Assembly (NCBI RefSeq): GCF_000142905.1
Contig: NW_013657677.1
Span: 124,001-188,000 of the forward strand
DNA length: 64,000 nucleotides
Source: Thecamonas trahens ATCC 50062
Taxonomy: Eukaryota; Protista; Apusomonadida
Direction of reading: 5' to 3'
Part shown: piece by piece, positions 20,451 to 44,022 of the stretch
Layout: each line of letters opens with the position of its first letter
Numbering within the stretch: position 1 is the first letter of the stretch
The notes under the pieces: generated by a model
The model's input: only the letters and a program-made list of their open reading frames with translations
Database searches by the model: none
What the model was told of the DNA's origin: nothing
Translations under genes and position numbers: made by a program

Positions 20451-22920
20451 CTACGGCGCAAGGACCTGTGCTACGAGCGACGGCGGGACCGGGCCGTACT
20501 CCTTAAAGGCAAGCGAAAAGGTGCCGTTGCCTTGGGTCAGTGAGCGGATGGCGGTCGAGTAGCCGGCGAGCGAGGCAAGTGGGACGGTGGCCCAGATCCG
20601 TTGCTGGCCGCCGGGCAGCGGCTGCATGCCGCTTACCTGGCCGCGCCGGAGCGGCGAGTTGAGGTCGGCAATGACCTGGCCGACGTAGTCCTCGCCAACA
20701 TCGACCTCCATCTCCATCAGCGGCTCCATGACGCTGACGGCGTCGGCATGGGCGGCGAGGAGAGCCATCATAGCCTTGGAAATGCCAACGGCAATCACGC
20801 CCGCCGGGACGGCGGAAAAGTCGCCGTCGGCGGCCTCGATGCCGACCAGCTCGACGGCGTTGCCGGTGAGCGGGAGCGAGGCGACGATGCCACGCTGAAG
20901 CGCGAGCTCGAGGCCAGTCTCGACAGCCTCGCGCTGCTCGCGGTTGAGGCCGTCAAGCGCGCCGTCAGCCACTGTCCACGTCTCGACAGCATCAGCATCG
21001 GGCGCAAGTGCAGGGCCGACAGCCGAGACCGCGAGCTCGATGTTGAGCTGGTGGGCTGGCCCAGGAGCAGCGAGCGAGCCGGCCGAGAGCGGACCGGTCG
21101 AAAAGGTGTACGCCATGTGTGCATCAACCGAGAGATGCTCCTTGTATGCTACGCGCGGCTCCGAGATGGTGCATGAGACGCCGAGCTCGTCACGGAGCCG
21201 CGTCGCGATGTACTCGAGATGGAGCTCGCCCATGCCCGAGAGAATGGTCTCGCCGGTCTCTTCGTCGATCGAGACTGAGAGCGACGGGTCTTCGCGGGTC
21301 ACCTGGGCGAGTGCCTTCTCCAGCTCAGGCTGGACCGCGAGCGACTCGGGCTCGACAGCGCAGAAGAAGACCGGCGGCGGCATGGAAACGCCAGCGAGGA
21401 CGACCGGGTGCTTGTCGTTACCGGCCACCACAGTGTCGCCGGTGGCGGCGTCGCGGAGCCCGAGCGCAGCGCCCAGCGCGCCGGGCCCGATCTCCTTCAC
21501 TTCCTCCATGTCGTCAGCATAGACCTTGTACAGCTTGGAGACCCGCTCCTTGACACCCTGCGTCGAGTTGAACAGCGTCGACGCCGAGCGGAGGACGCCC
21601 GAGTAGACCCGAAAGTAGACAACAGCGCCGCGCTGCGGAATGTGCGCAACCTTAAAGGCGAGGGCCGTCAGCGGCTCGCTCGCCTGTGGGGTGCGGGACA
21701 CGGATTGGACGCCGCCACCGTCAGGATCAGACGCCCCGGACTTGGCCACAGGCTTGTGCTTGTGCTTGTGCTTGCGCACAGACGTGACGCCCCCGCCACG
21801 GCGCGAGACACGGACAGCCGAGACCGGGCCGACATCGACCGGCGACGGCATGTAGTCGACGATGGCGTCAAGCAGTGGTTGGACGCCCTTGTTCTTGAAC
21901 GCCGAGCCGAGGAGGACGGGGACTGCTCGCCGGGATCGGGTGGCGCGCGCAAGCGCGTCGCGCACAAGATCGGGCTCTACGGCGCACGGCGCAGCCTCAT
22001 AGTCAATGTCAGCCTCAAGGAGGGCATCAAGAAACGCGTCGTCGAGTCCGACAAGCTCATCGACCAGACCGAGGCGGGCGGCGGCCATGTCCGCAGATTC
22101 GCGGGCGCAGCCCGGAGTCACCTCCTCGCCCCACTCACCACCAAAGGTCAGCTCCTTCATGGAGACCAGGTCGCGGACGGCACGAAACTCGCGATGCATG
22201 TCGCCTGAGACGACCGGAGCGTGGACAGGCACGAAAGAAGCGTCCGAGCCGAGCCGCTCGCGGAGCGAGGCCACAGCGGCGCCAAAGTCGGCGCCCTCGC
22301 GATCCATCTTGTTGACAAAGACCACAGTGGGGATACCGTACTTTTCGCACTGTGCCCACACCCGCAGTGTCTGTGCCTGCACGCCGGACACAGCGTCGAC
22401 AACCAGGACGGCGCCATCAAGCACACGGGCCGATCGCTCGACCTCGGCGGTAAAGTCGACGTGACCGGGCGTGTCGATGACGTTGATCTCATGTTCACGC
22501 CACGGAAGCGTGATGGCTGCGGCGTTAATGGTGATGCCGCGCGCCATTTCCTGCGGCAAGTAGTCCATGGTAGCGTTGCCGTCGTGGACCTCGCCCGGCC
22601 GACGGACCAGATTGGTGTAGAGCAGCATGCGCTCGACCACCGTAGTCTTGCCATGGTCGACATGGGCAAAGATGCCGACGTTGCGCATGCGTGCCCTGTC
22701 CCCATCGCCGCATCCAGGTTGTTTGAGTGAGTCTGTGATGTGATCAGGGGGGGAGGGGGAGGGGAATGCAGAGACAGAGGCAGAGAGAGACAGAGGGAGA
22801 GAGAGAGTCGCTCCTCCACACATACGCAGCATCATCCAGACTGCCACCCGACGAGGCCCACCGACGGGCCACCAGTGAGACCGAGAGAAGGCGGGCAGCC
22901 CGAGCGGGCATCCGCAGCAT
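20451..22920 (-). CDS. GFM2: Mitochondrial EF-G-family GTPase, likely EF-G2 / ribosome-releasing factor 2; exons 22920-22826 and 22695-20451
   Basis: Arg-rich presequence MLRMPARAARLLSVSLVARRWASS. Motifs AHVDHGKTT, RGITI, DTPGHVDF, NKMD, SGMGELHLE. The divergent domain IV favours EF-G2 over EF-G1. Confidence 0.85.
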
Positions 22921-23245
22921 GGCAAAGGGGGTAGGTGGTACGGTGGGTGGGTGGGGTGGAGTAGCGGGGGGGGAAGAGGGGGGATGGGTGTGGGAGAGTG
23001 AGTCCGTGGTGGTCCCTGCCTGGCCTGCTCGTCTACAGTTGAGCACGCTGGCTGCCAAACCGGGCTCGAACCCGCAAGTGGGTAGCGGCCGGGCGAGGGG
23101 GGGGCAACCGTGTTGCTCACCAAGATATTGGGTGAGTTCGCTCGAAGCGGACTGCGGTGGGGCAGCCGTGTCAACGACAACGGGCAGGGTATTTGACTCT
23201 GGACTCAGAGAATCATAGTGGAGAGAAGCAGAGTACAAGCAGAAC

Positions 23246-24601: not shown

Positions 24602-27600
24602 TTACGCGCGGATGGTTGACCGCGCATGTCCGCCCATGCCGCCGCCGCGGGCCGAATCGGCCTCAACATACCCGCGAAGGATCGGGGTGTCGGTGGCGAT
24701 CATGTCGAGAACGACGTTACCGCGGTAGGTAAAGCGCTCGCCGTGCTTGCGCTCATAGTCAACAAGAACAGTGTTGAGGTGAGCGTTGAGCTTGAGCAGC
24801 TCCTTCCACAGCTTCTCGCGCTCCGCAGCTTCGCGCTCGAGCCGCGACGCGTCCGAGCCGCCGGTCCGCGACGACGACTGCACATACTTGTGGATGCACT
24901 CGAGACGGTACTTGATGAACTCGCGCCGTGTCACGTGCTGCATCAGCGGAAGTCGGTCCGTGAGACGGGCCGACTCGCGCTCGTAGAGGGCAAGCAGCTT
25001 GTCTGAGTCGTTGGCTGCAGCATGAACCCGGTTGAGGAACGCCGAGATCTCAGCCTGATCAGCCTCAAGAGCCTCCCACATCTTCTCGATCGACGACTTG
25101 AGCATCGAGAGCTTCTGCTGCTTCGAGACCGCTGACTTGAGGATCTTGGCCTGGCTCGCCGCCGCTGCCGTGCGCTGGCTCGCCGCTGCAGAGTGCATGG
25201 TCATGCGCGCCACTTCGGCTTCACGGACCTTGAGGTTCTCCAGCGCCTCCATCTCCTTGAACGACGCCTTGTCGCGGGCACGCGCCTCAACCTCACCGAG
25301 GTATCGCGCGTGCAGCTCCGAGATGACCCGCTCGTACTTGGCCTGCATGTGCGTCTGGTAGTCAAACTTCCACTTGGCAAACGAGATCTTGGCCTTGCGG
25401 AGGCGTGTCTGCCACTCGCGCTTGTCCGACTCCTGGTCGGTTGTCGACGCCGCCACTGCAGCCTCAAAGTGCGCGAGCTGGTCCTTGTACAAAGACTCGT
25501 ACTGCACCAGCATGGCATCGTACTTGGCCTTGAGACGCTCTTCAAACGCCGCCGCAACCTCGGCGTTGCGCGCCTTGAGGTCCTCCATCGCTGATGACCA
25601 CTCGGCCGCGTGCTTGGCGTCGGTTGTCGAGGCCTCCGTCGACAGCGCCTCGAGCTCCTTGTCCTTGGCTGCGAGCAGAGCTTCGTAGTGAAGCGAGAGC
25701 CGCTTTTCAAGCTGCGACTCGCGAAGTTCGTAGTCGTCCTTGAGGATGGCCGAGTACGCTTCCAGCTTCTGCTCGTAGAACGCCTTGACCGATGCCTCGG
25801 CCGCCGCTCGTGCCTCCTGCTTGGCGGTAAAGAGCTCCTGCTCGCGCCCCGCAGCCTTTTCCATGATCTCGGCATGCATCTCCTGCGCCTCCTCTTGAAC
25901 CTTGGCCACAGTCTCTTGGTGCTCGTCAATGAGCGCCTCGTACTTGGAGTAGAGCGCCTTCTCGAACGAGAGCCGCGCCTCCTCCTCGGACGCTTCCAGA
26001 GACCGCAGCTTCTCGTCGCGCTCGTTGATCATTGCCCGGAGCGAGCCCTCCAGCTCGTCCTTGGCCGCAGCCGCGGACGTCCGCTGCTCCTCCAGGAGCA
26101 CGAGGTACTTCTGCTCCAGCGCTTCCTCGCGCTTCGCTTGAGATGCGACCGTTGACGCCAGCTCGGTCCGCAGCGCCTTGAGCTGCTCCTGCAGCGCCGC
26201 CGTTGTCTCGCTCAGCGTCGATTCGGACGCCGCCGTCAGCTCGGCAAGCTCTTCAGCAGCCTTGGTCTTGACCGCAGCAATCCTGTCCTCGTACTCGCTC
26301 TGCAGCGCCGCGAGCGCAGCCTCATGCTCGTGCCGCGACGCGAGAAGCTTGGCTCCCGCCTCGGACGCCGCCGCAGACATCGCCTCACGATGCTCGCGCT
26401 TGAGGTCCAGAATGTTCTCGTTGAGCGTCTCAATCTTGGCTTCGTACTCGGCGCGCTGCGCCTCGACCGCCTGCTCAGCTGCAATTCGCGCCGCAGACAT
26501 AGCCGACTTGAGCTCGAGCACCGCCGCCGCATGCTCAGCCCGAAGCTCCTCCATCGCTGCATCGGATGCATCCTTGGCCGCGGCCATATTGCGCCGCAGC
26601 CCAGCAGCAGCCTCCTCGTATGCCGCCTTGGTCTCGGCGAGCCGAACCTCGGCCGCGGCCTCAGCCTCCTCGGCCGCCACCGCTGCAGCCTTGAGCTCGG
26701 CATCCTTGGCCGCCACCGCGTCGGCCAGCTTCGCCTGCCACGTCGCCTTGAGGTCGTCAGCCGCCCACGCCGCTGCCTCCAGCTCGCCCTCCAGCTTGGC
26801 CACCAAAGCTGCTGACGCCTTTTCAGCCTTGGCCAGCCGCTCCTCAAACTTGGCGGCAAGCGCAGCTTCTGCGGCCGCACGCGCCTCCCGCGCCTCCTCT
26901 AGAGCGTTCTGGTGCGCGAGCGCGAGCTCTTCCTTGTCAGACGTGAGCTTCTCAATAGTAGCCACGTAGTTGGACGAGAGCTCGTCGTACTTGGCGGCAA
27001 GCGCAACCTCAAATGCCGCCCGCTCCTCAGCCATCTCCTGCTCGCGCTTCACCTTGTCTGCGAGCAGCGCAGCAAGCTCGGTCCGATGCGACTCGTCGGC
27101 GGCCTCGCGCTGAGCACGTGACTCCTCCTTGTGCTCCTTGAGCATGGCATTGAACTTGGTCCGCACCTCGTTCTCCGACGTCGCAAGGAGGTCTTCGTAG
27201 TATGACCGCAGCTTGTCCTCAAACGCGACGCGATCCTTGAGGTCGGCAACCCGCGCCGTCCGGTGCGACTCCTCCACCTGCTCAAGGATCTTGGCCTCAA
27301 ACGCCGCCTGCTCCGCCGCATACGCTGCCTTGAGCTCGGCCTCCAGCTCGGCCTTCTCCCGCTCCATGGCCAGCGTCCGCTCGCGCTCCATAGTCGCAAC
27401 CTCGTCCTTGTACGCCTCCATGGCGCGGTCGCGGGCCACAATAATCGCATTGAGCTCGTTCTTTGTCGCCGAAGCCTCGGCCGATGCTGCCGCCAGAGCA
27501 TCCGAGAGCTCCTTGGCATGCGCCACGTTGAGCGACGAGAGAGCGCCTTGGTGCTCGGCATCGGCCTCGAGTGCCGCAGCCTTCACTGACGCAATTTGAG

Positions 27601-30600
27601 TGACCAGCGACTTGTTGGTTGCCTCCATCTCTTCCAGCTCGTCGCGGAGCTTCTGGAGCGTGGCACGAATCTCCTCCTCGTACTCGGCCTGCTGCTTCAG
27701 GAGCGCCTCCTTCTTGAGCAGCTCCTCCTCGGCCTGCGCCTCCAGGGCAGCCTGGACCTCTGCCGAGCGCTTGGCAGCCGCGGCCTCAACAGACTCGCGG
27801 TGCTTGGCCACCATGCTCTGGTAGTTCTCGTACATCTCCTTCTCCTTGGCCTCGAGCGCCGCCGTCCGCTGCACGTTGGCTGCGTCCTGGTCGGCAATGA
27901 GCTTCTCGTACTTGGTCCGCAGCGAGTTCTCGTACTCGAGCTTGTCAGCATCGAGCTCGGCCTCGCGGTTGCGGAGAGCAGCCGCATCCTCTTCGGCCTT
28001 GACTTCAAGCTCCTCGGCCCGCTCCTTGTACGACGCGTCGAGCGCTGCAGCCTCGGCCTCCAGCTCCGCAAGCTTGGCCTTGGTCATGGCGCGCATCTCC
28101 TCCATAAACGCCTTCTTGGACGCCTCGTTCTCACGCTCGCGCTCGCGCAGCTCGCGCATCTTGGCATCGTGCCGCTCGGTGAGCTCACGGTCAAAGGCGA
28201 TCTTCTCGCGCTCAAACTCCTCCTTGAGCGCCTTGAGCTCGACCTCCTTGGCCTCGTACGAGCTCCGCAGCTCCGACTCGAGCTTCGCCTGCTCCTCATA
28301 CAGCGAGTGCTCCTTGGCCGCAAGCTTGGCAGACTTCTCCTCAAAGTCCGCCAGAATCTTGGCCTTGAACGCCACCTTTTCGGCCTCGCGCTCGTCGTCG
28401 CGTTCCACAAGCGACTGGCGCAGCTCCTCGGTCTCGGTCAGAAGCCGAATCCGGAACTCATCCTCCTGAGCCTTGAGCTCGCTTGCCTTGGTCTCGTACA
28501 TCGCAATCGACGCGTCCATGGCTGCCTTGCGCGCCTCGGCCTCAGCCTCGAGGTTAGCAGCGTGCTCAGCTGCGAGAGCCTCAAACTTTTCGTTGAGCGC
28601 AGTCTCGTACGTCGCAAGCTCAGCCTTCTGCGACTCGAGTGCAGCGGCGTCAGCATCCTTCAGCCGCTGGTACTGAGCACGAAGGTTGGCCTCAAACTCG
28701 GCCTTCTCCGCCTCGATGGCGTTCGCCCGAGCATTGAGCTCGGCAAGCCGCTCCTCGTGCTGGGCACGCAGCTGCGCCTCGGTGGCAGCCTTGGCCTCGT
28801 CCATCCGCGTCTTGGCATCGCGCAGCTGCTCCTCCTTGAGCTTGTAGCTCTGAATGAGAGCAAGCTCCTTCTCGTTGACCCGCTGCTCAATGGCGGCCTC
28901 GCGCTGCGCAACCTCGGCGAGCTTGGCTGCATGGGCCTCGTCGATGGCTGCCCGCAGCTCGGCAAGCTGCGCCTCGCGCGCCTCGTGCTGCCGCAGCAGC
29001 TCGGCCTGCATATCCTGATGGCGCTCCATGACTTCGCGCTCCATCGACTCCTTTTGCGCCAAGAGCTCCATCTGCTGCTCCTTGATCTGGTCGAGGAACT
29101 TGCGGTCAGTCTCGGACCGCTGCGCCATTTCGGACTTGACCTGCTCGCGGAACTCGCGGACCATGGTCTCGTAGTCGGCCTCGAGCTTCTCCTTGTACTT
29201 GTCCAGCTCGGCACGCCGGGCCACCAGCTCGAGTTCGTCTTCTTCGCGCTGCGCTTCAGCACGAGCGCGGACGCCATCTTCAAACTTGGCCTTCTCGGTC
29301 CGCATCTCCTGCTCGCGCTTGTGCAGCTCCTCGAGCTTGAGCGAGAACCGCGCCTCCAGATCGGCCTTAAACTTGGACTTGACCGCGTCGAGCTCGGCAG
29401 ACTTGGCCTCAAACTGATCGTTAAGCTCACGACGAAGCTTGAGCATGTCCGCCTCGAGCGCCGCCTTGCGCTCGCGCAGCTCGCCTTCCAGCCGCTCCTT
29501 GTTGTTGTGCAACGTCGTCGCAAGCTCAATCTGCTGCTTGTTGAGCTCGTCTTCACGCTCGCGCAGCGACTCCTCGTACAGCGCACGCGTGGCCTCAACC
29601 TCGGCCTTGAGGTTTGCCTCAAACTCCTTGTTCGACTCGTCGTACTTGGCTCGGACCTCGGCCTCGATCTCGCGCTGCGCACGCTCGACAAAGATCTGGT
29701 ACTCGCGTTCCCACGACGCGATCTGGTCGCGGAATTCAAATATCTGCCGGTCGCGCTCCGCAATCTCGGTCGAGAGCTGGATCTTAAGTTCAGACATTTT
29801 CTGGTGGTGATCGGCCTTCATCTCCTCCAGGTTCTTCTGGTGGACAAGCTCAGCCTCGAGGGCCAGTGCCTTGAGCCTGTCAATCTCATCGGAGAGCGCC
29901 GCCTCAACCTCGGTCAGCGTCACCAGCTGCTCCTTCATCGACATCATTGCTCGAGCCACATCCTCGCGAGCCTCGGCCTGGTCAGCCTCCAGCGCCTCAC
30001 GTTTGGCAAGTTCGGCTGTTGCCACTGCCTCCATGGCGTCGCGGGTCGCGTTGGCCGCGTCACGAGCCGCGGCATCCGCCGTCGCCTTGGACTCCTCGAT
30101 CATGGCCTGCACCCGCACAAACAGGTCGCGCTCGTATGCCTCCAGCTCAGCCTTGCGCTCCCGCAGCAGCGAGTTGTCCAGTTCGAGCGCCTTCTCGTAC
30201 TGTGCACGGATCTGGCGCTCGTACTCGAGCTTCTGCGCCTCGAGGTTAGCCTCCAACGACTTGGCCTCCTCCATTTTGGCATCGTACTTGTCGCGGTACT
30301 GCGCCTCGTACTTGGCGCGGTCGCGCTCGAGCGCCAGCTCGGCTTCTGCCAGCGCCTGCTGCTTGTTCTGGTACTTTTGGACAAGATCGGCCTCAAACGC
30401 CTTCTTCTCGCCCTCCAGCTCCAGCGCACGGGCCTCCAGCTCAGCCGCACGGGCCTCCAGCCGCTCGCGAAGGGTTGCCTCCTGCTTGATGAGCGAGACC
30501 TCAAGGTCGTGCTCGCGCGCCTCGAGCGCCGCCAGCTTGTCGGCAAACTCGGCCCGGAGCTTGGCCTCGGTCGCCGTCTTCTCCTCGTGAAGGACAATCT

Positions 30601-33600
30601 CCTTCTCGCGAAGCTCGGCACACTTGGCATCGTACGATGCGCGGAGAGCACCCTCGTACTCCTTCTTGTCTGACTCAAAGACAGCCTCGCGGTCCTTGAG
30701 CTCGGCAAGCTCGCGCTCGTAGTGAGCCTCGAGCTCGGCACGGTACTCGGCGTTTTTGGCATCGTTTGCCTCAGACCGCTGGATGAGCTCGAGCTTGAGT
30801 GCATCGTACTTGTCCTGCAGTTGCCGCTCGAGCGTCGCCAGGTTGGCCTGCATCGCCTCCTGCTGGTCGTCGAGTGAGCGCATCGCCTCGCGGAGCTTGG
30901 CATCGCGGTCGGCCTGCTCGGCCTCCATGTCAGCACGATGGCCGGCAACCATCGACTGATACTTGTCAAAGAGCTCGTGCTCGTACGCGTCCAGCTCGGC
31001 CTTGCGCTCGCGGAGCTTGGCCTCGGCCGCAGCCTGGAGCTCCTCAAACTGGTCACGGAGTGAGGTCTCGTATGCAGACTTGGCCGACTCGAGCGCAAGC
31101 TCACGGTCCTTAAGGTCGGCAAGCTTCTCTTCGTACTTGCGGACAAGCATGAGCTTGAACTCCTGCTTCTCAACATCGCGCGCACGCTCAGTCTCGATAA
31201 GTTGCTCCTGGAGAGCCTGGTGCTTCTCGATCATCTCGCGCTCAAACTCGGAACGAGCGTTGATGAGCTCCATCTCGTCGGCCTCGCGACGTGCCTCCAG
31301 CCGCGACAGCAGCTCCATCTCACGCGAGTGAAGCTCGGCCTCAAGCGACTTGAGGAACGAGCGCTGGTTGTTCTGGTTCTCCTCCACAGACGCCAGCAGC
31401 GAGGTCTGGAACTCCTTCTCCTTGGCCTCAAACTGCGACCGAAGGTCATTCTCGATCTCGGTTTGTGCCCGCTCGAGCCAGAGCTGGTACTCGCGCTCCC
31501 ACGTGGCATTCTGCTCGCGCAGCTCCATGATGGTTCGATCCCGCTTGGCGATCTCGCCGTTGAGCTCGTTTCGCGTCGCTGAGAGCTTCTCCTCAGCCTC
31601 GGTGAGCAGGTTCTCGCGGTCGGCCTGATGCTCGGCCTTGAGCGCAATGCCCGCCGAGCGCAGAAGCGCAATCTCCTCACGGAGCACCTTGTGCTCGGCC
31701 TCCATCGACTCGAGCTGGGAGACAAGCTCCGAGAGTGTCGTCTGCACCTTGGCCTCGTACTCGGCATGCTCCGACCGGAGCGTGTCGTGGATGCGCACCT
31801 TCTCGCGAGTCTGCGCTTCCAGCGTTGCTGCATGGTCGCGCAGCCGCGCACGGAGCTTGTCCTCGATCTCACGGTTGTGCTTGGCCATCAACTGATCCAT
31901 CTCGTCGGCAAAGTCGAGCTCGCGTGCCTCGAGCTCACGCTTGAGACGAGCGACTTCGGCCATGTCAGCCTCGCGGGTCTTGAGCGCCTTTTCGCGGGTC
32001 TCGCGCTCGTGCGCCGCCTTGGCCGCGGCAAACGCCATCTCGCGCTCCGACGCCGTGTTGTCAAGCTCCTCCTCACGTGCACGGAACTCAGCCTCGAGCG
32101 CTGCCCGATCGTGCACCAGCTTCTCGCGATCCTTGCGAAGCTGCGCACGCTCTGTATCGAACCGGTCACGAAGCTCCTTTCCAGCGCACGCGCATCCGCC
32201 TCGAGCTGAGACTCGCGGACCTTGAACTCATCAAGCTCGGCATTGTACTTGTCACGAAGAGATTTTTCGTAGGCAAACTTGTCGGACTCGAGCTGCACCT
32301 CGTACTTGCGGAGCTCCTCGAGCTTGGCATCGTGGAGGGCACGCAGCTCGGCCTCCATCGTCGCACGTGACGCCTCAAGCTCGTGCTCCTTCACACGCAG
32401 CGACTCAAGCTTGGCATCAGACGCAGCACGGAGCTCATCCTCGTACGCCCGAGCCTTGGCGTCAAAAGCAGCTTCCTTCAGCTTGAGCTCCTCCATCTTG
32501 GTCAGGTACTGCTCTCGCAGTTCACCTTCAAGCTTTTCGATCCGCGACTGAGCCTCGACCTCGGCGAGCTTGAGCTCAGAGTTCTTTGACTCGTACTTGA
32601 TCCGCAGCTCACGCTCATACGCCGCCTTGGACGATGCGAGCTCAACCTGTGCCTCAGAGACGGCTGCCAGACGCGCTTCGTGCTCGGCATCAAGCTGGAG
32701 CTTGTACTCGTTCATCTCGAGCTCCCGGTCACGGTCGCGGGCAAGAAGCTCGCTCTGAAGCTTCTCGTACTTGGCCAGCGACGCGCGCTCAAGCTCCGAC
32801 TTGTGTGACATGAGCGCAAGCTCGCGGTCGGCAAGCTCGGCGAGCTGAGCCTTGAGCTCCTCAACCTGGGTCCGCGCCGCATCTGCCGCCTTGGCCTGCG
32901 CCTCTGCCAGTGAGTCGGCAAAGTCGGCGTGAAGCTTGCGCTCGTACGCCACCAGCTCGTCCTGAGCAGCCGCCAGCGAAGCCTGCGAGTCGGCGAGGGC
33001 CGACTCGTAGCGGGCACGGACCGAGGCCTCGTACGCATCCTTCTCGCGGACAAGCTGCGCCTCGCGGGCCTTGAGCTCGGCAAACTGCTCGTCATACTTG
33101 GCAACGAGTGCATCTTCGAACATCGACTTTTCCTTCTCAATCTTGAGCTCGCGTGCCTGGAACTCGTGAGCAAGTGCGTCGGCACGGCGACGGTAGGCCT
33201 CCTCGTGTTCGAGGCGGTCGGCGAGGAGCTGCGCCTCGCGATCCTGCAGCGCTGCGAGCGCCTTCTCGTACTGCGCATCGAGGAACTGCTTGTGGGAAAG
33301 CTTCTGTGCATCGCGCTCGCGCTCGCGTGCCTCTGCCGCTGCCGCCTGATCGGCAGCGGCGGCTAGCATCTCGTCTTCGATGTGCTTGCGGAGCTGAGCA
33401 ACCTCAACGAGAAGAGCCTCGCGCTTCGAGTGCATGGCAGTGACAAGGTCCTTCTCGCGGGCGAGCAGCTCAGCCATGCGCGCGTTAAAGTAGTCATCAT
33501 GCTGAGCCTGGACGGCAGCAAGCTGCGCCTCGTGCTCGCGAAGAAGCTCGTTGTGCATCTTCTCGTACTTGTCGCGAATCGAGATCTCCAGCTCGGCAGC

Positions 33601-36600
33601 CACCGAGTCGCGGATACGCGATGTCTGATTTGCTGCTGCTGAGAGCTCGTTCTTGAGTGCTACAATGCTTGCATTCTTGTTGGCAAGCTCGCGCGCAAGC
33701 TCGGCCTCGCGGGCCGCGAGCGTGTTGGCAGCCTTGGTCTCGGCACGCGCCACCGCCGCCACCGAAGACGTCTGCTCCTCCAGCAGCTGTGCCTTGAGCA
33801 ACGCCATCTCGGCCAGCGACGACCGGTGTGCCTGCTCCATGGCATCGAGCTTGGATGTCAGATCGTTGAGTACACCCTGCATTGACCGCTCATACTCGAG
33901 CTGCTCAGCACGGGCAGAGTCACGCTTGGCAAGTTCGGCACGGGCCTGATCTGAGAGCGACGACGAGAGTGCGTCACGCCGGGCGTTGTACTCAGCCTCG
34001 AGGGCTGACTTACGTTGAGCGACCTGGTTCGCAACTTCAGCATCGACAGCGTCCATCTTGGCACGCAGCTGGCCCCGTAGCTTATCCGTCTCAGCCTGCA
34101 GTGCGCGCGCCCGCTCGTCAGCGGTCTGGCGGAGCTTGGCCTCGTAGTCGGCCTTGTCCTTGTCAAGCGCCGCAGCCTGAGCCTGAAGGTCGGCAAGCTG
34201 ACCCTGGTACTTGTCAAAGAGCTCGCGCTCGTACGACTCGGCGCGGGCGAGAGCCTCGCGCGCCTTGGCGGCCTCATCAGCAGCCAGAGCATCAAACTTG
34301 GACCGAAGTGAAGCCTCGAGCTCGCGCTTGGCATCCGCCGTCTCGCGCTCGCGGGCGGCAAGCGCCGCTAGCTTGGCATCATACTTGGCCTCGAGCTCGG
34401 CTCGGAGGCGTTCCGACTGCTGCTCACGGAGACGAACCGACTCGAGGAGCGCTGTGTGCTTGGCCTCAAACGAGGCACGAAGCGCAGACTCCATGTCGGC
34501 CTTGGCATTCGCCACTTCAGCCGCAACCTTATTGCGGGACTCGGTGAGGTTCTCCAGCAGCTCGGCCTCACGGCGCGCTAGAGCAGCTTCGCGCGAGGCC
34601 AGCGCAGCCTCTTGGAGCTGGGTCGACTTTTGCACAGAGGCAAGCATCGCACGCTCAGTGTCCTTGGCCCGCGACTCGAGCGATGAGACGAGCGAAGCCC
34701 GGATCTCGGCAGCCTTGGCCTCGCGCCAGGCAGCAGACTCGGCGTCACGAGCGGCAGCGTCCTGCTGCAGCTGGACAATCCGCGACTCGCGCTCGGCAAT
34801 TGCCGCGTGCAGCTCGTTGCGGGTAGCCGAGAGCTCACTGGCGGCGGCGGCATTGGCATCGGCCATCTTCGACTGCCATTCGGCATCGCGCTGAAGCTGG
34901 TACGCATTGAGCCGAGCAATTTCGGTAGTCAGCATCTGGTGCTGGTCCTCCATGGCCGCAAGCTGGTCGTTAAGCTTGGAGACAAAGCTCTGGATTTCAG
35001 CCACGTACGCCTCCTGTTGGCGGTTAAAGGCACGCTTCTTCTCCAGCGACGCACGCTCCTGGGCCTCAAACTCGGAACGAGAGGCGGTTGCTCGCGCCGC
35101 AGCCTCCTCATCAAGCTCGGTCTTGTGCGACTCGACCATGGCCTGGAACTTGGCGAACAGATCCTGCTCGACTTTTGCGCTGCGGCGCGCTGCGATCGCA
35201 GCTGGGCAGCAGCTTGAGCCTGCATCTGCTCGTACATCTCGCGTAGCTCCATCTCGTACGCCGACTTTTCCTGCTCAAGCGCAAGCTCGCGATCCGCAAG
35301 CGCCTGCACCTTGGCCTCGTACTTGGACCGGAGCGAGGCTTCAAAGTCAGCCTTGGCCCGAACAAGTGCCTTCTCGCGCTCAGCAAGCGCCGCCGTCCGC
35401 GCTGCAAACTTCTCCTCGAGCTGCGACTTGAACTGGAACTTTTCCTCGTCGAGCGCGCGAGAGCGACGGAGCGCCTCGTCCTGCAGCGCCTCCTGCTTGG
35501 CCAGCAGCTGCGCCTCGAGCGCCTCCTTCCGCTGGGCATACTCGGCCTCGAGCGCCTCACGCTGGCGCTGGAGCCGGTTCATGAGGTCCGACTCGCGAGT
35601 CGAGAGCGTCTGCTCGCGCTCGCGCAGGAACGACTCCTGCGAGCGGCGCGCAGCCTCTACATCCTCCAGCATGCGCATTTCGAGCTCCTTGTTGATGAGC
35701 TCGTACTTGGAACGGACGTCGGCCTCGATTTCGACCTGGGCACGATCAAGCCAAAGCTTGTACTCGCGGTCCATGGCGGCAATCTTCTCACGGAGCTCGA
35801 CTAGCGCGCGGTCCTTCTCGGCGAGTGCCTCGTTCATCGAGTTGCGGACGTCCGACAGCTTGGCCTCGGACGACGCCAGCAGCGCTGCAGTCGCCTTCTG
35901 GTGCTCAGCCTTGAGCTGGAGCTCGGTCGAGCGAGCCGAAGAAAGCTGTGCAGAGAGCTCTGCGTTCTGCGACTCCAGCTCGGCGAGCTGGTCGTGGATC
36001 GACTTGAGGAATGCCTCCATCTGGTTCTGGTACGCCTCCTGCGACTTGATAAAGGCATCCGCTTTTGCACCTCTTCGACAGCAAACGACTCAAAGGTCGC
36101 CCGTGACTCCTGGGCCCGCTCCGCCACAGTGGCGTCAGCAGCAGCCTTGTACTCCTCAAGCATCGAAGTGAAACGCGCAAAGAGGTCCGACTCGTACGCC
36201 TCCAGCTCCTCGCGCTTGGCCGACAGACGTGCTGTCGACTCCGCCTGCAGAGCCTCAAACTGACCACGGAGCTTGTTCTTGTACTCAGCGGCGTCGGCAT
36301 CCAGCGTCCTCTGGTGCTCCTGCAGCTCAGCAAGCCTGCTCTCGTAGCGAGCCTCAAGATCCTCCTTGTACGCCAGCTTCTCAGCTTCGCGCTCGCGTTC
36401 GCGAGCGGCAAGCTCAGCCTCCTGCTGCTCAAACTGCGCCATGAGTGTCCGCTCCATACCGAGCCTGCGCTCGTCCAGCTCCTCGGCCGACGCCGCGCGA
36501 GCCGCCGCAATCTTGTCGAGGGCTTCCTTCTCGCGAGCGAGAAGCGCAGCCTCGCGCTCGCGGAGGTGCGCCTCCTTAGAACGGCGGGCAGCGTCGACTT

Positions 36601-39600
36601 CAGCATGCAGCTTCTCGCCGAGCTCCTTGTTCATGGCCTGGAACCGGTCCATCATCTCGACCTCGAGCTCGGCCTTGGCCCGCTCGACGAGCAGCGCGTA
36701 CTCGCGCTCCCACAGCGCAACCTGCTCCTTGAGCTCCAAAATGGTCCGATCACGAGCGGCAAGCTCCTTGTTCGACTCCATGCGGAGCGACGAGAGGGTG
36801 TTCTCGGCAGCGGAGCGGAGCTCCTCCTCACGGCGGGTCTGCACAGCATCCGACTCGAGCAGCCGAGTCCGGAGCATGGCAATTTCCTTGCGGAGCGTCT
36901 TGTTTGTCTCAGACATCTCCTTGGTCTGCAGGTGAAGGTGCGCGAGGAAAGACTCCATCTCCTGCTTGTAAGCTTCCTGCTCGCGGAGAAGCGCGTCTTG
37001 TTGGGCCATTTCGGCAGCAGCGTGCTCCTCGAGCTGAGCACGGGCTGCCTGGGTCCGAGCGTACGCCTCGTCGGAGGACTGCGACCGGAAGTGGTCGACC
37101 ATCGACTTGAACTTATCATGCAGTTGCTTCTCATAGTCGGCGAGCTTGTCTTGCCGCTCGCGGGCGCGGTCAAGCTCTTCCTGTGAAATGGCCTCGTACT
37201 GCGAGCGGAGCGAGGCCTCAAACGCATCCTTCTCGGCACGAACGCGCTCCTCAAGCTCGCGAAGTTCGCGCATCCGGGTCTGGTACTTGGTCTCCAGCGT
37301 CTCCTTATAGCGAGTGAGGTCGTCCTCGCGGGCGCGCTCAGCCTCGGCGTTGGATGCCATGAGCTCGTCGCGCGAGCGAATGAACTCGGCCATAAGTTCC
37401 TCGCGCTTACCAGCGAGCTCGCGCTCCTGCGCCTCGCGGGCAGCCTGGAGCCGCTCGAGCATTTCGGTCTCGCGGGCGGCGAGTGAGTCCTCGCGCTCCT
37501 TGAGAATCGAGGCCTGCAGTGCCCGAGACTTTTCGGCCTCGGACTTGAGCTGGGTCGAGAGCTCCTTGTTGAGTGCGTCGTACTTGGAGAGGACGCCGGC
37601 TTCGATCTCGCCCTGGGCGCGCTCGAGCCAGACTTGGTACTCGCGCTCCCAGGCGGCGAGCTGGCCCTGGAGGTCGATGATGGCGCGGTCGCGCTCAGAG
37701 ATCTGAGCGGTGAGCTGCGAACGGAGCTCCGACAGCTGAGCGGCATGCGAGGTAGCGGCTTCGTCCTCCTTGCGGGCGGCGGCAGCCGCAGCCTCGAGTG
37801 CCTGAGTGCGGAGCAGCGAGTTCTCCGCAGCAAGCGACGCGTGCTTGGCCTCCATGGCCTCGATGTGCTCATGCATGCGCTTGAGGAACGCCTCCATCTC
37901 CATCTTGTACTCCTCCTGCTGGAAGAGGAATCGGTCCTTGGCCTGGATGTCGGCCGAGGCCTGCTCTTGGAGTGCAATGCGGGTCTCGACGGCGCGGTTG
38001 GCAAGCTCAGACTCAAGGTGAGCGTTGTGCTGATCAACCATGGCGGTGAAGCGCGCGTTGAGATCGGCCTCGTACGAGGCGAGCTCGCGCTTGTGGGCCT
38101 CGAGCTTTTTGGCGTCGGACTCTTGGACCGACTCGTACTGGGCGAGCAGGTGCGACTTAAACTCGTCCTTCTCGCGGTCGAGGGCGGCAGCCTTGGCGCG
38201 AAGCTCCTCCATCTTCTTGGCCACCTTCGATTCGAGCTCGAGCTTGGCCGAGAGGAGCTCGGCCTGGAGGTCAGCCTCCTTCTGCAGGTACGTGGCGTTG
38301 AGCTCCTCGTGTTTGGCAAGGAGATCTGCCTCCATGGCTCTGCGCTTGGCCTCGAGCTGAGTCTCGAGCCTGTCGCGGGTGAGCGCCATGCCAGTGATGA
38401 CGTCACGTTCCTTCTGGTCGAGGGTGACCTCGCGATCGTCGAGGGCAGCGGCGGCGCGCTTGATCGACTCATCTTGAAGCGCGCGAAGCTGGGCCTCGAG
38501 GTCCTTGGAACGGGCCTCGTACTTTTCGCGGAGCGAGGCCTCGAGCTCGACGCGAGCGCGGGCGAGTGCCGACGACGCCTCGCGGTCCTTGGCAGCGAGC
38601 TGCGAGCGGAGGCTGACAATCTCGGCATCGCGAGCAGTTACCTCGGCGTTAGCAGTGTCCTGGCATGCCGAGACGCGAGCCGACCACTCGTCGACAAGCG
38701 AGCGGGCGGTGTCGGCGGCGGCCGCCTGGGCCTCAAGCAGCTGGGCACGGAGCGAGGCGACTTGGAGCGACGACTGACGGCGGGCCTCCTCCACAGCAAG
38801 AAGCTGCCGACGGAGGCCCTCAAGGAACTCGTTCATCTGCGATTCGTACGCAGTGCGCTCAGCGGCCATGTCGGCAAGGACACTGGCGTCCGACGACGCA
38901 ATCTTGGCGAGGTCATCGGCGTTTTCGCGGAGCCGCACCGAGGTCTCCTTAGCAACTGCCGACTTGTGCGACTCAAGCAGGGCCTTAAAGCGTGCGGTCT
39001 GCTGGGCCTCGAGCTCATCGAGGGTAGCCGCGCGCTCCTCAAGCGCCTTGGCGTCGAGCTCAAACTCGGCCGCATACTGGGCACGGATCTGAGCCTCGTA
39101 CTCCTTCTTGTCCTGAACGAACCGTGCCTGAAGCGACTGCAGCTGTTCGAGGCGGGTCTGGTAGGAGTTGTCGAGGGCGGCGCGGTAGTCGGCGAGCTGA
39201 GCCTCACGCTCGCGCTCGCGGGCAGCATACTGCGCCTCGACATCCTGAAGCTGGGCGGTGAGTGCACGCTCGCGTGCCATGTACTCGCGCTCACGAGCGT
39301 CCATGGCGGCCTTGTGCTCGGCGGCGGCGGCAAGGAACTTGGCCTGCATCTCCCGCTCGTAGTCGGAGAGCTCATCCTTCTTGGAGGCGAGGAAAGCCGA
39401 GTCGGCAGCGAGTTCAGCCTGGTACTGCTCACGGAGCGACGCCTCGTAGGCGAGGCGGTCCTGAGCCATTGATGCTTGTGCGGCCTGAAGCGCCTCGAGC
39501 TTCTTCTGGTACGCCAGGTTGAGCTCTGACTTGTAGTTCTGGTACTCGAGCTCGCGCGCCCGGTCGCGGTCGATGAGCTGGGCTTGGGCGGCATGAACCT

Positions 39601-42600
39601 GCTCCATCAGGTCGCGCTCGCGCGAAGCAAGAGCAGCCTCGCGCTCGAGAATGTAAGCCTCATGCTTGGCGCGGGTCTCAGCGACGTCATCGCGAAGGGC
39701 GCGCTCGTAAGCCGAGAGCTCGTCGCGCTGCTTGGCAACGGCCTCGGACTTGGAGGCCAGCGAGCGGTCGAGAGCGGCGCGGGCCTTGGCCTCGAACGCC
39801 TCGCGCTCGTCCTGTAGCTCGCGCTCACGGCGGTCGAGGGCAGCGGCGCGGGAGCGGTAGTTGGCATCGCAAGTGGCCTTGTACTCGCGCTTGTCAGCCT
39901 CGAGAGCGGCGATCCGCTCGTCCATCTCGAGCATAGCGATGCGAAGACGCTCGTCGGCCTCCTTCTCCTTGCGAGCGAGTGCGCGCTCACGGTCGTGGAG
40001 CTGGGCCTTGAGCGCGTCAAGCGCGTTGCGGTTGGCCTCGCGGAGCTGGGCCTCGTAGTCCTCAAGCTCGGACTTTTTCTCTTGGAGGAAGGCAACGTCA
40101 AGCTGGAGCTCCTGGGCGTACTGGTCGCGGAGCGAGGCTTCGTAGCCTGCCTTTTCGTCGCGGAGCGAGGCTTCCAGCCGCTGAAGCGAAGCGAGCTTGC
40201 GCTGGTAGGTCGCGTCGAGCTCGGCCTTGTAGGCAGACTTTTCCTCGTCGCGGGCGGCATCGCGCGAGGCAGCCTCTTCGAGCAGCTGGTTCTGGAACTC
40301 GCGCATCTGCTTGGCGAGCTCCTTCTCGCGGGCGTCGAGGGCGGCCATGCGGTCAGCAACCTGGGCCTTGGCCTGGGCCATGAGCTTGGCGTTGAGCTCC
40401 TGCTGGGTCTTCTCGTGCTCGGTGAGCTCGTCCTTGCGCGAATCAAAGGCGGCGCGCTCGAGGGCGAGGTCGGCCTCAAATTGGGCGCGCAGCTCAGCCT
40501 GGTAGCGGGCACGGTCATCGGCCATGCGAGCCTTCTCGGCCTGGAGCGCCTCGTAGCGACGCTGGTACGACTTGTCGACTTGAGCGCGATAGTTGGCCAT
40601 TTCTTGCTCACGGGTATGGTCGCGGGTGGAGGACTCGGACTGTGCGGCGGCGAGCTGGTCGAGCAGCTGGGTCTCGCGCATGCGGAAGAAGTGCTCGCGG
40701 TCGGCGAGCTGCTTCTTGTGACCGGCAATGAGTGTCTGGAACCGCGACTGGAGGTCGTTTTCGTACGTTGAGAGCTCCGAGGCCTTGGACGCCAGGTTGG
40801 CGCGCTCAAGCTCAAGCTCCTGCTGGAGACGCTCCTCGATTTGAGCCTCATAGCGGGAGCGCTCAGCGCGGAGCTGGGCCTCCGAGTCGTTGAGGGCCTG
40901 GAGGCGGGCCTGGAGCTGGCGTTCGAGGCGGGCCTTGAGGTCGTTCACCTCAGCATTGCGGGCGGCCTCGCGAGCGTTAAACTGCGACTCGAGCTCGTCC
41001 TTGGCGTCGGCCACCTCGTGGCGGAGCGCAGCCTCGCGCTCACGGAACGCGGCCTCGCGCGCGGCGAGCGTTTCCTTGTGCTGAGCGAGGACGCGCTCGA
41101 ACCGAGCCTGCTGCTCCTTCTCGTAGTCCTCGAGCTCGGCGCGCTTCGAGTTGAGGAAGGCTGCGTCAACAGCGAGCTCCTGCTCGTACTGGTCGTGAAG
41201 CTGCTTCTCGTACTTGACCTTTTCGGCACGGAGATCCGACTCGAGCTGGCGGAGAGCCGCAACCTTGCGCTGGTAGGCAGCGTCGAGCTCAGACTTGAAC
41301 GAAGCCTTTTCCTGCTCACGGGCATCGTCGCGGGCGGCAGCCTCCTGCTCGATGGCAGCAGCGCGAGCGGCAAGGTCCTGCTCCTTGCGGTCAACGGCAG
41401 CCTGGCGGGTGCGGAGGTAGTCCTCCTTACGAGCGAGCGAAGCGAGGAGGCGGTCATGCTGGTCCTTGTGGAACGCGTCGAGCTGTGCCTTCTTGGACTC
41501 GAGCAGCTGGATATCGTTGTCGAGCTCCTCGCGGTACTGTGCCTTGAGCGCGCGCTCAAAGTTGAGCTTGTCCTCTTGAAGGGCAAGCTCGAGCTTCTTC
41601 AGCTCCTGGGCCTTGTTGCGGGCGGCCTCCTCCAGCTCGCGCTTGGCGGCGTTGAGCTCAACGTCGCGCTGGTGGTCGCGGGCCAGGAACTCGTCCTGGA
41701 GCGAGGCCTCGAGGGCGTGAACGCGCGAGAGAAGATCCTTCTCCTTGGCAAGGTATGCCTGCTCGCGGGCAAACGACTCGGAGCGGAGACGCTCGTTGAA
41801 CGAGGCGACGGCTTCGTCGAGGGCGGCGCGTTCGGCGGCGAGGGCGGCGCGGGCCGTGTTGACCTCGTCGGCCGCCGCGTCCTTGGCGGCGTGGACCTTG
41901 GCACGGGTGGCGTCATCAAGCGCGGCCTGGCGGGCAACAAGCTGGGCCTGGGCCTCGCGGAGCGCGTCGGCCTTGGCAGCGTACTCGGCCTCGAGTGATG
42001 CCTTGGCGTCAAAGTAGGCACGAAGGCGGTCCTGCTCTGCGGCATCAGCCTCGGCACGGAGCTGCGAGAGCTGAGCGGCGAGGTCCTGCTCGCGGCGGAG
42101 AGCTTGGGCCTGCGACTCGCGAATGAACTCGTCCTTGGCCTGGAGCGAGCCCTGCATGGCAGCGCGAACCTTGTCGGCCATTTCTGCCTCGATGGTGGCG
42201 CGGAGCTGCGACTCGAGTTGGGCAGCCTGGGCGTCCATGCGAGCCATACGAGAGCGGAGTGCTGACTCGCGGGCGTCCAGCTCGCGCTGCTGGGCGGCGA
42301 GGAGGGTGGCGACCTCGGCCTCACGAGCGCGGTCGCGGGCGATGAGATCGTCCTCAAGACGCTTGACCGAGGCAAGAAGCTCCTCGCGCTGCTTGGCAAA
42401 GCGAGCCTCGCGCTCGGCGAGGTACGCCTCTTGCGACTTGGCCGAGTCCTGGGTGTAGGCGAGAATGCGAGCAGCATACTCGGCCTCGTAGGCCTCGCGG
42501 AGCTCAGACTCAAACTGGACCTTGGCGTTCTCTAGCTCGGCCTCCTTGGAGCGGAGGTCGCGGAGCTTGCTGTCGAGCTGGCCCTGGAGCGAGGAGCGGT

Positions 42601-44022
42601 ACTGGGCGAGCTCCAGCTCACGCTGGCGCTCGCGAGCCTGCAGCTCGTCCATGATCGAGGCAAGCTTGGCTTGGAGGGCCGACTCGCGGGCGTTAGCCTC
42701 GGCTTCTTTGTCAGCCAGGAACCGCTCCTGGGCAGCGATGAGCGACGAGGTCTCGCCCTCGACCGATGCGGCAAAGGCGGCCTCGTACTCCCTGCGGAGC
42801 TCGTACTCAAAGTTGACTTTGGCTTGCTCAAGCTCCGCCTCGCGGGCCGAGAGCGCTTGGACCTTGGAGTGGTATGCGTCTTCGAGCTCCTTCTGGAAGT
42901 GCCATTTTTCGGCCTCGCGGTCGCGGTCGCGGGCGAGCAGCTCCTCCTTGGCGGTCTGCATCTTGGAGTACAGCTCGGCCTCGAGCTTGGAGAGCGCAAT
43001 CTGTGCCGAAGCAAGGTCGGCCGGAGGGGCCGAGGCCGAGAGCAGCGCGTTGGTAAGCGACTTGGTCGACGCGAGCCGACGAGCGTTGAGCTCGGAAATG
43101 TCGGTCTCGAGCGCCGAGAGTCGGGCAGTAAAGCCCGGGTCTACGGCAGTATGGGACATGCCGGGATCAGCGTCAATGTGCGGGGGCGCTGAGGTGAGGG
43201 CAAGCGGTGTGAAGCCCTGAGCGTTGATGGCGTCGGTGTTGGCGCCTGCGGAAATGAGGAGATCAGCGACAGAGGTGTGGTCGTTGATACACGCGCAGTG
43301 GAGCGGCGTCCAGTCCTTGGCGTTGGTGGCGTTGGGAGATGCGCCTGCAGTTAGGAGCGCCTTAACAGTCGAAGTGTGACCTGAGAAGGCAGCCCAGTGG
43401 AGAGGGGTGTTGCCAAAGGCGTCAGGCGTCGAGGGGGAGGAACCCTGGTTCAGTAGTTTCCTGTCGCCGTCACCCGTGTCCGGTCGTTGTCCGACAGGCC
43501 CAAGTTGACCAAGTGTAGTGTGTGTGGTGCCCGTGCGGAGGGAGAGGCGAGATGTGTGTGTAAGCGTGGGTGAGTAGCAATATCTGTGCAGGGTAGCCGG
43601 CAGGAGAAGCCAATGAGGAGCACGGGGGCAGCGGGGAATGCCCGGCGTCGTGTGCGGGAATACCAAAGGAGCCGAGTGGAAAATCTACGAATTTGGCGCG
43701 AAAAATGCGTGTGCCAGGGCGGAGCTCGACTGCGACCAGAAAGTGGTGTGGCGAGGACATAAAGAGCTTCAGCTGCTTGTCGGACGTTGACCGGTAAAGC
43801 ATAGAAGGCTAGCTGTGTAGGGGTGCGGGAGAAGCTCGTCAGAAACCTGGTATAAAGCATGCCAGTGCCGGCGCAGGGGGCGAGTGTGGGGGGCGTGGCG
43901 CGATTTTGGCGCCAATCGCCGCGCGACAGGGCTGGCGGGGGAAGGGAGGGGAAGGGAGGGGGAAGGTGGTCATACCTTACGAGGTGTGTGTCTCCGTCTG
44001 ATGCAGCAGCGTGCAGGCTCAT
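24602..44022 (-). CDS. Giant (~6,300 aa) protein: ankyrin repeats, 29-residue-repeat helical rod, MAP65/Ase1/PRC1-like C-terminal domain; exon 44022-43976, intron, exon 43460-24602 with three single-base shifts
   Basis: ORFs 35834..43666, 34929..36020, 31888..35139 and 24602..32116 join seamlessly if one base is added at ~36064, ~35174 and ~32179. The spliced start gives MSLHAAASDGDTHLVR-KLLNQG...GNTPLHWAA (ankyrin). Confidence 0.85.
43692..43916. promoter_or_regulatory. Two E2F-type sites in the first intron of the giant gene
   Basis: TTTGGCGCGAAA at 43692-43703 (reverse complement TTTCGCGCCAAA) and TTTGGCGCCAA at 43905-43915. Confidence 0.45.

Follow-up and report, generated by a model that had tools for sequence, protein, structure and literature searches.

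A giant single-copy gene of Thecamonas trahens encodes a predicted straight coiled-coil rod with ankyrin repeats and a PRC1/MAP65-type C-terminus

Results

One minus-strand gene covers the repeat region

We analyzed a stretch of 64,000 nucleotides (nt) of Thecamonas trahens ATCC 50062 (assembly GCF_000142905.1, contig NW_013657677.1, positions 124,001 to 188,000 of the forward strand), further referred to as the window. A preliminary description of this DNA had pointed to nested repeats in one part of it. We observed that these repeats belong to a single gene on the minus strand, located at 44022-24605 of the window, with a product of approximately 6,302 amino acids (aa). The gene (24605..44022) was delineated on the basis of its open stretches and their frames, the ATG, the donor GTATGA and the acceptor AG. 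Exon 1 (44022-43976, minus strand) begins with the ATG at 44022 and is followed by intron 1 of 515 nt (43975-43461, minus strand), bounded by GT..AG with the above donor and acceptor. Downstream of the intron there is one long exon, which was read as four open pieces; these are consecutive long open stretches in frames 1, 0, 2 and 1, spanning 43684 to 24605. Only one copy of the gene occurs in the genome, which comprises 28.7 Mb in 131 contigs. Database searches were performed with the unbroken pieces only, never with the joined or spliced protein. Joined into one reading, with an X in place of each frame break, the pieces served for statistics scripts only, and the exons of the orthologue described below were aligned separately.

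The reading frame is interrupted at three sites only. All three are short runs of A on the coding strand that lack exactly one base. The first break lies in the T-run of the plus strand at 36063..36066 (coding A4, Ala opposite in the orthologue described below), the second at 35173..35176 (coding A4, Arg opposite) and the third at 32178..32180 (coding A3, Lys opposite). Runs of at least three A make up only 1.1% of the gene, yet they contain all three breaks. The reading frame of the orthologue runs straight through all three sites, and the register of the repeats is kept on both flanks of each break. We consider it very probable that the breaks are homopolymer errors of the assembly. Introns at these sites were ruled out by the colinearity of the orthologue and by the size of the breaks, which amounts to one base of an A-run in every case. 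The three frame changes do stand in the deposited sequence, and could be biological if the gene were a recently broken pseudogene or subject to programmed frameshifting. We regard this as highly implausible in view of the A-runs, the colinear orthologue and the downstream pieces, each of which is open and conserved over thousands of codons.

Nine landmarks divide the protein into unequal super-repeats

The landmark RDRxI..L..Q.A.WEREY..W.ERA..EIE and its degenerate versions were located with an iterated hidden Markov model (HMM) profile, seeded with one interval of 313 aa, and the copies were aligned. We detected nine landmarks bounding eight super-repeats (27338..38632, minus strand), with pairwise gaps of 29 and 58 residues between copies. 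The landmarks start at 38632, 37693, 36754, 35816, 34791, 33678, 31543, 29755 and 27433. All nine had been noticed before, and each was found exactly 55 nt above the coordinate given for it then. Position 1 of the profile model falls at residues 1685, 1998, 2311, 2624, 2966, 3337, 4049, 4645 and 5419 of the joined reading.

The raw spacings of the landmarks are 939, 939, 938, 1025, 1113, 2135, 1788 and 2322 nt. With one base added per break they correspond to 313, 313, 313, 342, 371, 712, 596 and 774 aa, so that the first five values of the preliminary description were reproduced. It had also taken the spacing of 938 nt across the shift at 36064 as a sign of one lost base; this was correct, and the same logic holds for 1025 and 2135 nt. 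The further proposal that the spacings grow in steps of 29 residues is true for the series of 313, 342 and 371 aa, but not for 712, 596 and 774 aa, which exceed 313 by 399, 283 and 461, that is not by multiples of 29. The difference between 712 and 596 is 116, or 4x29. Aligned with copy 2, copy 4 has a single insertion of 29 residues and copy 5 a single insertion of 58 residues, both located within the part of the unit occupied by the array of 29-residue units.

The copies of the super-repeat are 21-40% identical as proteins, and Tandem Repeats Finder detected no long-period array in the DNA. Therefore the duplications are ancient, and recent DNA tandem repeats were ruled out by the same two observations.

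The N-terminal third of the rod is organized in another way. It consists of modules of approximately 99-120 aa (about 4x29) with RDxxRExE motifs (39220..42931, minus strand), recognized by the spacings of these motifs, which are 99, 99, 219, 116, 236, 120, 232 and 116 residues. The HMM matches in this third cover model positions ~85-215.

The 29-residue unit contains two hendecads and a heptad

Periodicity was assessed by autocorrelation of the rod with BLOSUM62 scores. At lag 29 the score was 0.210 and at lag 313 it was 0.097, while shuffled sequences averaged -0.355 (standard deviation (SD) 0.028) and reached -0.228 at most over 999 lags x 100 shuffles. The autocorrelation proposed earlier as a check thus gave lags 29 and 313 at approximately 20 and 16 SD above the shuffles; lags 58, 116, 342 and 371 were likewise far above them, and lags 11, 18, 22, 40 and 51 were also enriched. 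Lag 29 was the best local lag in 29 of the 53 segments of 232 aa. A loose core motif of the 29-residue unit recurred at a spacing of 29 residues 26-28 times, while 0.03 occurrences were expected. The strongest array of units is located at 32107..33246 (minus strand), where the lag-29 score reaches 1.04, and a second at 30427-31177 (minus strand).

The consensus calculated from 48 in-register units is E.EK..YE..LR..YE..L..L. Its hydrophobic core comprises eight positions (4, 7, 11, 15, 19, 22, 26 and 29), and the resulting pattern of 3-4-4-4-3-4-3-4 equals 11+11+7. A unit of 29 residues had been described as four heptads plus a skip; the length is identical, but two hendecads plus a heptad fit the core better. 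The register of the units is held within blocks only and not along the whole rod, and a rod-wide charge period of 29 residues was looked for and was absent.

The rod is a continuous helix with an almost straight seam

The absence of proline, the low glycine content, the period of 3.636, the Fourier and phase analyses and the AlphaFold2 (AF2) model delimit an alpha-helical rod of ~5,750-5,800 residues (25780..43021, minus strand). Proline does not occur between residues 221 and 6247 (6,026 residues), and the rod contains 0.5% glycine and 19.7% alanine. Strongly hydrophobic residues account for only ~23% and are confined to a narrow seam. Fourier analysis of hydrophobicity, performed on 5,780 residues, gave a single sharp peak, located at 3.636 (power 148, as compared with at most 13 in shuffles), and no signal at the heptad period of 3.5. 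Along ~5,800 residues the phase of the seam drifts slowly, with no abrupt resets. The monomer model of a 313-aa unit obtained with AF2 is one helix comprising residues 2-312 (predicted local distance difference test (pLDDT) 84). It is well supported by these data that the rod is one continuous amphipathic alpha-helix. A chain of spectrin-like folded bundles was ruled out by the lack of proline over 6,026 residues, the glycine content and the single helix of the AF2 model.

An undistorted helix has 3.63 residues per turn, and hendecad dimers are rich in alanine (PMC9858780). As the period of the seam equals the pitch of the undistorted helix, the seam is almost straight. Non-heptad (hendecad-containing) coiled coils are recognized by a period of ~3.63-3.67, with which the rod agrees in having its peak at 3.636 and none at 3.5. 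The same type of period without power at 3.5 was observed in the orthologues L009, P0001 and P0016. The rod had been proposed to be a segmented coiled coil, and our data agree with a segmented, non-heptad helix of the coiled-coil type built on a 29-residue unit. Most likely, two such helices associate in a two-stranded coiled coil that is hardly supercoiled at all. Using an axial rise of 0.1485-0.15 nm per residue, we calculated a length of ~0.87 μm for the rod, if extended, and of 46.5-47 nm for 313 residues.

Expressed in turns of the seam, the intervals of 313, 342, 371, 712, 596 and 774 aa equal 86.08, 94.05, 102.03, 195.8, 163.9 and 212.85, respectively. All of these values are near whole numbers, and therefore the landmarks face roughly one side of the rod.

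A second giant coiled-coil gene was noticed elsewhere in the genome, on the plus strand of L012 (G000:C26:320000-329999) from ~3359. Its open stretches measure 1,257 and 1,115 aa and are read in different frames. The hydrophobic period is again 3.636 (power 49), the lags are 51/11/33/40, and the super-repeat is matched weakly (E 4e-6). Giant non-heptad rods seem to be a theme of this genome.

The two ends carry ankyrin repeats and a PRC1/MAP65-type domain

Ankyrin repeats begin at residue 1 and continue across the intron (43229..44022, minus strand). They were identified with the Pfam profiles Ank, Ank_2 and Ank_4 (expectation values (E) from 1e-15 to 7e-18; 6.6e-18 for Ank on the N-terminus), which assigns this end to the ankyrin repeats, and the translation of exon 1 forms the beginning of an ankyrin repeat.

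The C-terminal region (24605..25603, minus strand) consists of a helical rod and a spectrin-fold domain of PRC1/Ase1/MAP65 type, as indicated by PF03999, by profile comparison with the PDB and by Foldseek. PF03999 (MAP65_ASE1) matched the C-terminal 333 aa taken alone with E 4.4e-8 and 32.7 bits, above the curated cut-off of 26.9, while it was unreported in the scan of the whole piece of 2,524 aa. A word search with the C-terminal part of this piece gave no match, an effect of the length window that does not speak for absence. A profile of the C-terminus built with five homologues matched only PRC1 chains in the PDB (3nrx and 5kmg, E 1.5e-4), the match being to the microtubule-binding spectrin domain of PRC1. 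PRC1 chains also took the top rank among 350,542 chains when the AF2 model of the domain (pLDDT 80) was compared by Foldseek. By prediction from profiles and fold, the C-terminus belongs to the PRC1/MAP65-type microtubule-binding domains. A link of the protein to microtubules had been proposed from its 29-residue unit, and this domain supports it independently.

No canonical MAP65/Ase1/PRC1 was detected elsewhere in the genome, and no tektin was detected in it, both being weak tests. It is possible that the organism has no PRC1-type protein other than this giant.

Interval lengths are identical in an orthologue with saturated synonymous sites

Comparison of the super-repeat profile with 1.84 billion representative proteins gave 57 matches only, mostly short environmental fragments. 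An orthologue was identified on contigs L009 and L011, which come from one sequencing run (SRR23274481) and have a guanine plus cytosine (GC) content of 53% and short GT..CTAAC..AG introns. Its landmarks are spaced by 939, 939 (plus a 50-nt intron), 939, 1026, 1113, 2136 and 1788 nt. The intervals of 313, 313, 313, 342, 371, 712 and 596 aa are the same as the first seven of the window. The proteins are 46-54% identical. The four-fold sites are 27% identical, and therefore synonymous sites are saturated.

We observed no net insertion or deletion (indel) in the rod relative to this orthologue over residues 181-1251 and 1679-4892 (~4,280 rod residues). The only departures in the alignment were a single-residue gap in the linker preceding the rod and one compensated +1/-1 pair. 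Hydrophobic positions are kept hydrophobic in 88% of cases and Trp in 9 of 9. The landmarks of the WEREY type are 79-97% identical to those of the orthologue and the degenerate ones 24-41%. From the aligned sequences we infer selection for the exact number of residues in each interval.

In another, more distant orthologue, L010/P0001 (GC 35%, 30% identical), the seam of 3.64 and a lag-29 signal are retained. The C-terminal domain is shared by an 886-aa protein of an unclassified eukaryote, whose rod is periodic at 29/22/51. Searching the ESM Atlas with the homologue P0016 gave weak leads only.

The nearer relative has introns that are absent from the window gene. They were located at L009:3183-3232 and on L011 near 2486-2550, 3223-3278 and ~3490-3546, are ~50-54 nt long and have the form GTAAGT..CTAAC..CAG. 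This implies either loss of introns in the lineage of the window or gain in the relative.

Neighboring genes

The window (GC 62-66%) is eukaryotic, with adjoining open reading frames (ORFs) that carry Nuf2, MA3, SH3 and EF-G domains. The genome also encodes IFT57, and therefore the organism is a flagellate. The giant gene is adjoined at 20451-23180 (minus strand) by a gene for an EF-G-type GTPase, which is 59% identical to one eukaryote-like relative and otherwise ~40% identical to bacterial EF-G, a comparison made in a lineage thinly sampled in public data. An ORF of 2,176 aa at 29-6559 (plus strand) has leucine-rich repeats near its C-terminus only (LRR_6, E 9e-28), and the rest of it had no Pfam match.

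Discussion

A microtubule-anchored spacer is the preferred reading

We consider it probable, though far from assured, that the gene encodes a giant straight two-stranded rod that is anchored to microtubules and serves as a spacer or ruler of fixed length. The PRC1/MAP65-type domain would fix one end to microtubules and the ankyrin end would bind another structure, so that the rod would hold both at a fixed distance. The first third of the rod is composed of ~116-aa modules and the remainder of super-repeats that measure at least 313 aa and begin with a landmark containing Trp. The super-repeats grew by insertion of whole 29-residue units into their array part. The landmarks, which would be fixed in axial position and face roughly one side, could serve as sites of docking or self-association. 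A molecular ruler had been suggested before. Exact length in the 53%-identical orthologue fits a ruler or spacer, but the unequal intervals do not agree with a simple periodic ruler.

Several points weigh against this interpretation. Only three landmark intervals equal 313, and the inequality of the intervals argues against simple periodicity. In L010/P0001 the intervals are 506 and 450 aa and the protein is much shorter; therefore the exact length is not conserved family-wide. The level of indels expected at 50% identity is a general expectation and not one derived from a matched control gene pair of the two species. The PRC1 fold match has a template modelling (TM) score of 0.56-0.62 on the domain with weak Foldseek E (0.1-0.9), and the PF03999 match is limited to profile positions 179-439 of 477. 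The AF2 model covers the monomer only, and the two-stranded pairing is a prediction that goes beyond it. The proposed function, microtubule binding included, is likewise a prediction from the sequence and the models.

Rods of this type could also lie side by side in a microtubule-associated striated fibre of the SF-assemblin type, with the 313-aa unit setting a cross-striation of ~46-47 nm, as had been suggested in the preliminary description. SF-assemblin and beta-giardin have a 29-residue repeat and form microtubule-associated striated fibres, which was stated correctly there (PMC2119799). This sequence principle is common to them and the giant protein. Three consecutive intervals of exactly 313 aa would give 46.5-47 nm, a predicted microtubule-binding end is present, and strict conservation of length would be expected for in-register packing too. 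We nevertheless find a striated fibre unlikely. There was no match to PF06705 on the four pieces (E<=0.01) or on five segments rich in the 29-residue unit (E<=10), and none in the whole genome, where the test was weak and its search control silent. The interval is other than 313 in five cases out of eight, and modules of ~99-120 aa make up the N-terminal third. A rod-wide charge period of 29 residues, like that driving staggered packing in myosin-type rods, is absent. Bundles in register would yield an aperiodic bar-code rather than uniform striation. The uniform version of the proposed ~46 nm striation is thus improbable, because the intervals are unequal (3/8 equal 313) and another module fills the N-terminal third.

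Still less likely, in our opinion, is a ruler bound to the lattice along a microtubule or microtubular root, similar to the axonemal 96-nm rulers, in which the 29-residue units would follow tubulin subunits. The tubulin monomer measures ~4.1 nm, while 29 residues of a straight helix span ~4.3-4.35 nm, and this mismatch of 4-7% accumulates. Moreover, the register of the units changes between blocks, and the narrow hydrophobic seam suggests pairing of helices and not binding to a polar surface. On the other side, a straight seam would let one face follow a straight protofilament, the landmarks are roughly on the same face and a PRC1-type microtubule-binding domain is predicted. A 4-nm match to tubulin was also raised for SF-assemblin by Weber et al. 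(PMC2119799).

An array of amphipathic helices coating a lipid surface in the manner of apolipoproteins or perilipins can be practically dismissed: the period is close to 11/3 and the best PDB matches of the super-repeat profile were apolipoprotein A-IV (E 1.8e-6), apolipoprotein E and lamin, but these matches probably reflect similarity of periodicity, that to apolipoprotein covering the periodic part only, and the protein lacks proline punctuation, has its few strongly hydrophobic residues in a narrow seam and ends in ankyrin and PRC1-type domains.

Comparison with known systems

The giant protein and SF-assemblin or beta-giardin have in common a 29-residue repeat in an alpha-helical rod, eight core positions and association with microtubules, the last predicted here. 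However, the rod of SF-assemblin has 253 residues and a short non-helical head, as compared with ~5,800 residues in a protein of ~6,302 aa. Super-repeats, ankyrin repeats and a PRC1-type domain are found in the giant protein only. SF-assemblin forms 2-nm filaments and cross-striated fibres. Membership in SF-assemblin was ruled out by the lack of a PF06705 match, the size and the architecture; homology was searched for and no match was obtained in segments of the protein rich in the 29-residue unit (E<=10) or, by a weak test, in the genome. As far as the profile searches and architecture indicate, the resemblance is an analogy and not membership, and the 29-residue principle apparently arose here independently.

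The C-terminal ~280 residues match the profile of PRC1/Ase1/MAP65, the antiparallel microtubule cross-linkers, above the cut-off and include the spectrin domain. The N-terminal dimerisation part of the family (profile 1-178) is unmatched, being replaced by ~6,000 residues of ankyrin repeats and rod. Members of the family have ~600 aa, and the giant protein is about ten times longer.

The hendecad-rich bacterial proteins Scy/FilP are also long, Ala-rich, dimer-type rods with a period near 3.64 (PMC9858780), to which the lags of 11, 18, 22, 40 and 51 correspond here. Neither sequence nor domain context relates them to the giant protein, and Scy, a little more than 1,000 residues long, lacks landmark super-repeats.

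In two further proteins a short unit recurs within a longer super-repeat, the arrangement being linked to filament geometry and the length being under selection. The myosin II rod has 28-residue zones in super-repeats of 196 residues and nebulin has 35-residue modules in super-repeats of 245 residues. Units, fold and partners are different in these proteins, and the super-repeats of the giant protein are unequal. Our survey of the literature on the ultrastructure of the organism and on a giant MAP65/ankyrin protein found nothing usable.

Significance

If extended, the rod would be ~0.87 μm long and, to our knowledge, would rank with the longest uninterrupted coiled coils that have been predicted in proteins. 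Because its seam has the period of an undistorted helix, it would also exemplify in nature a straight rod, free of supercoiling, on the length scale of a cell. That ~4,280 residues align without a net indel, at an identity of 46-54% and with synonymous sites saturated, is a strong sign that length and register are themselves under selection. The family is rare, with the above 57 matches in 1.84 billion representative proteins.

In summary, these results suggest that the PRC1/MAP65 family extends to a very different architecture. We also put forward, tentatively and with less confidence than the spacer itself, that the protein may represent an undescribed class of microtubule-anchored "bar-code ruler". 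This would be a straight, non-supercoiled coiled coil of nearly a micron, in which selection fixes to the residue both the absolute length and the axial positions of conserved Trp docking sites on one face. In the cells of a poorly studied lineage of flagellates, such a ruler would determine how far a microtubular root lies from a partner bound by the ankyrin repeats.

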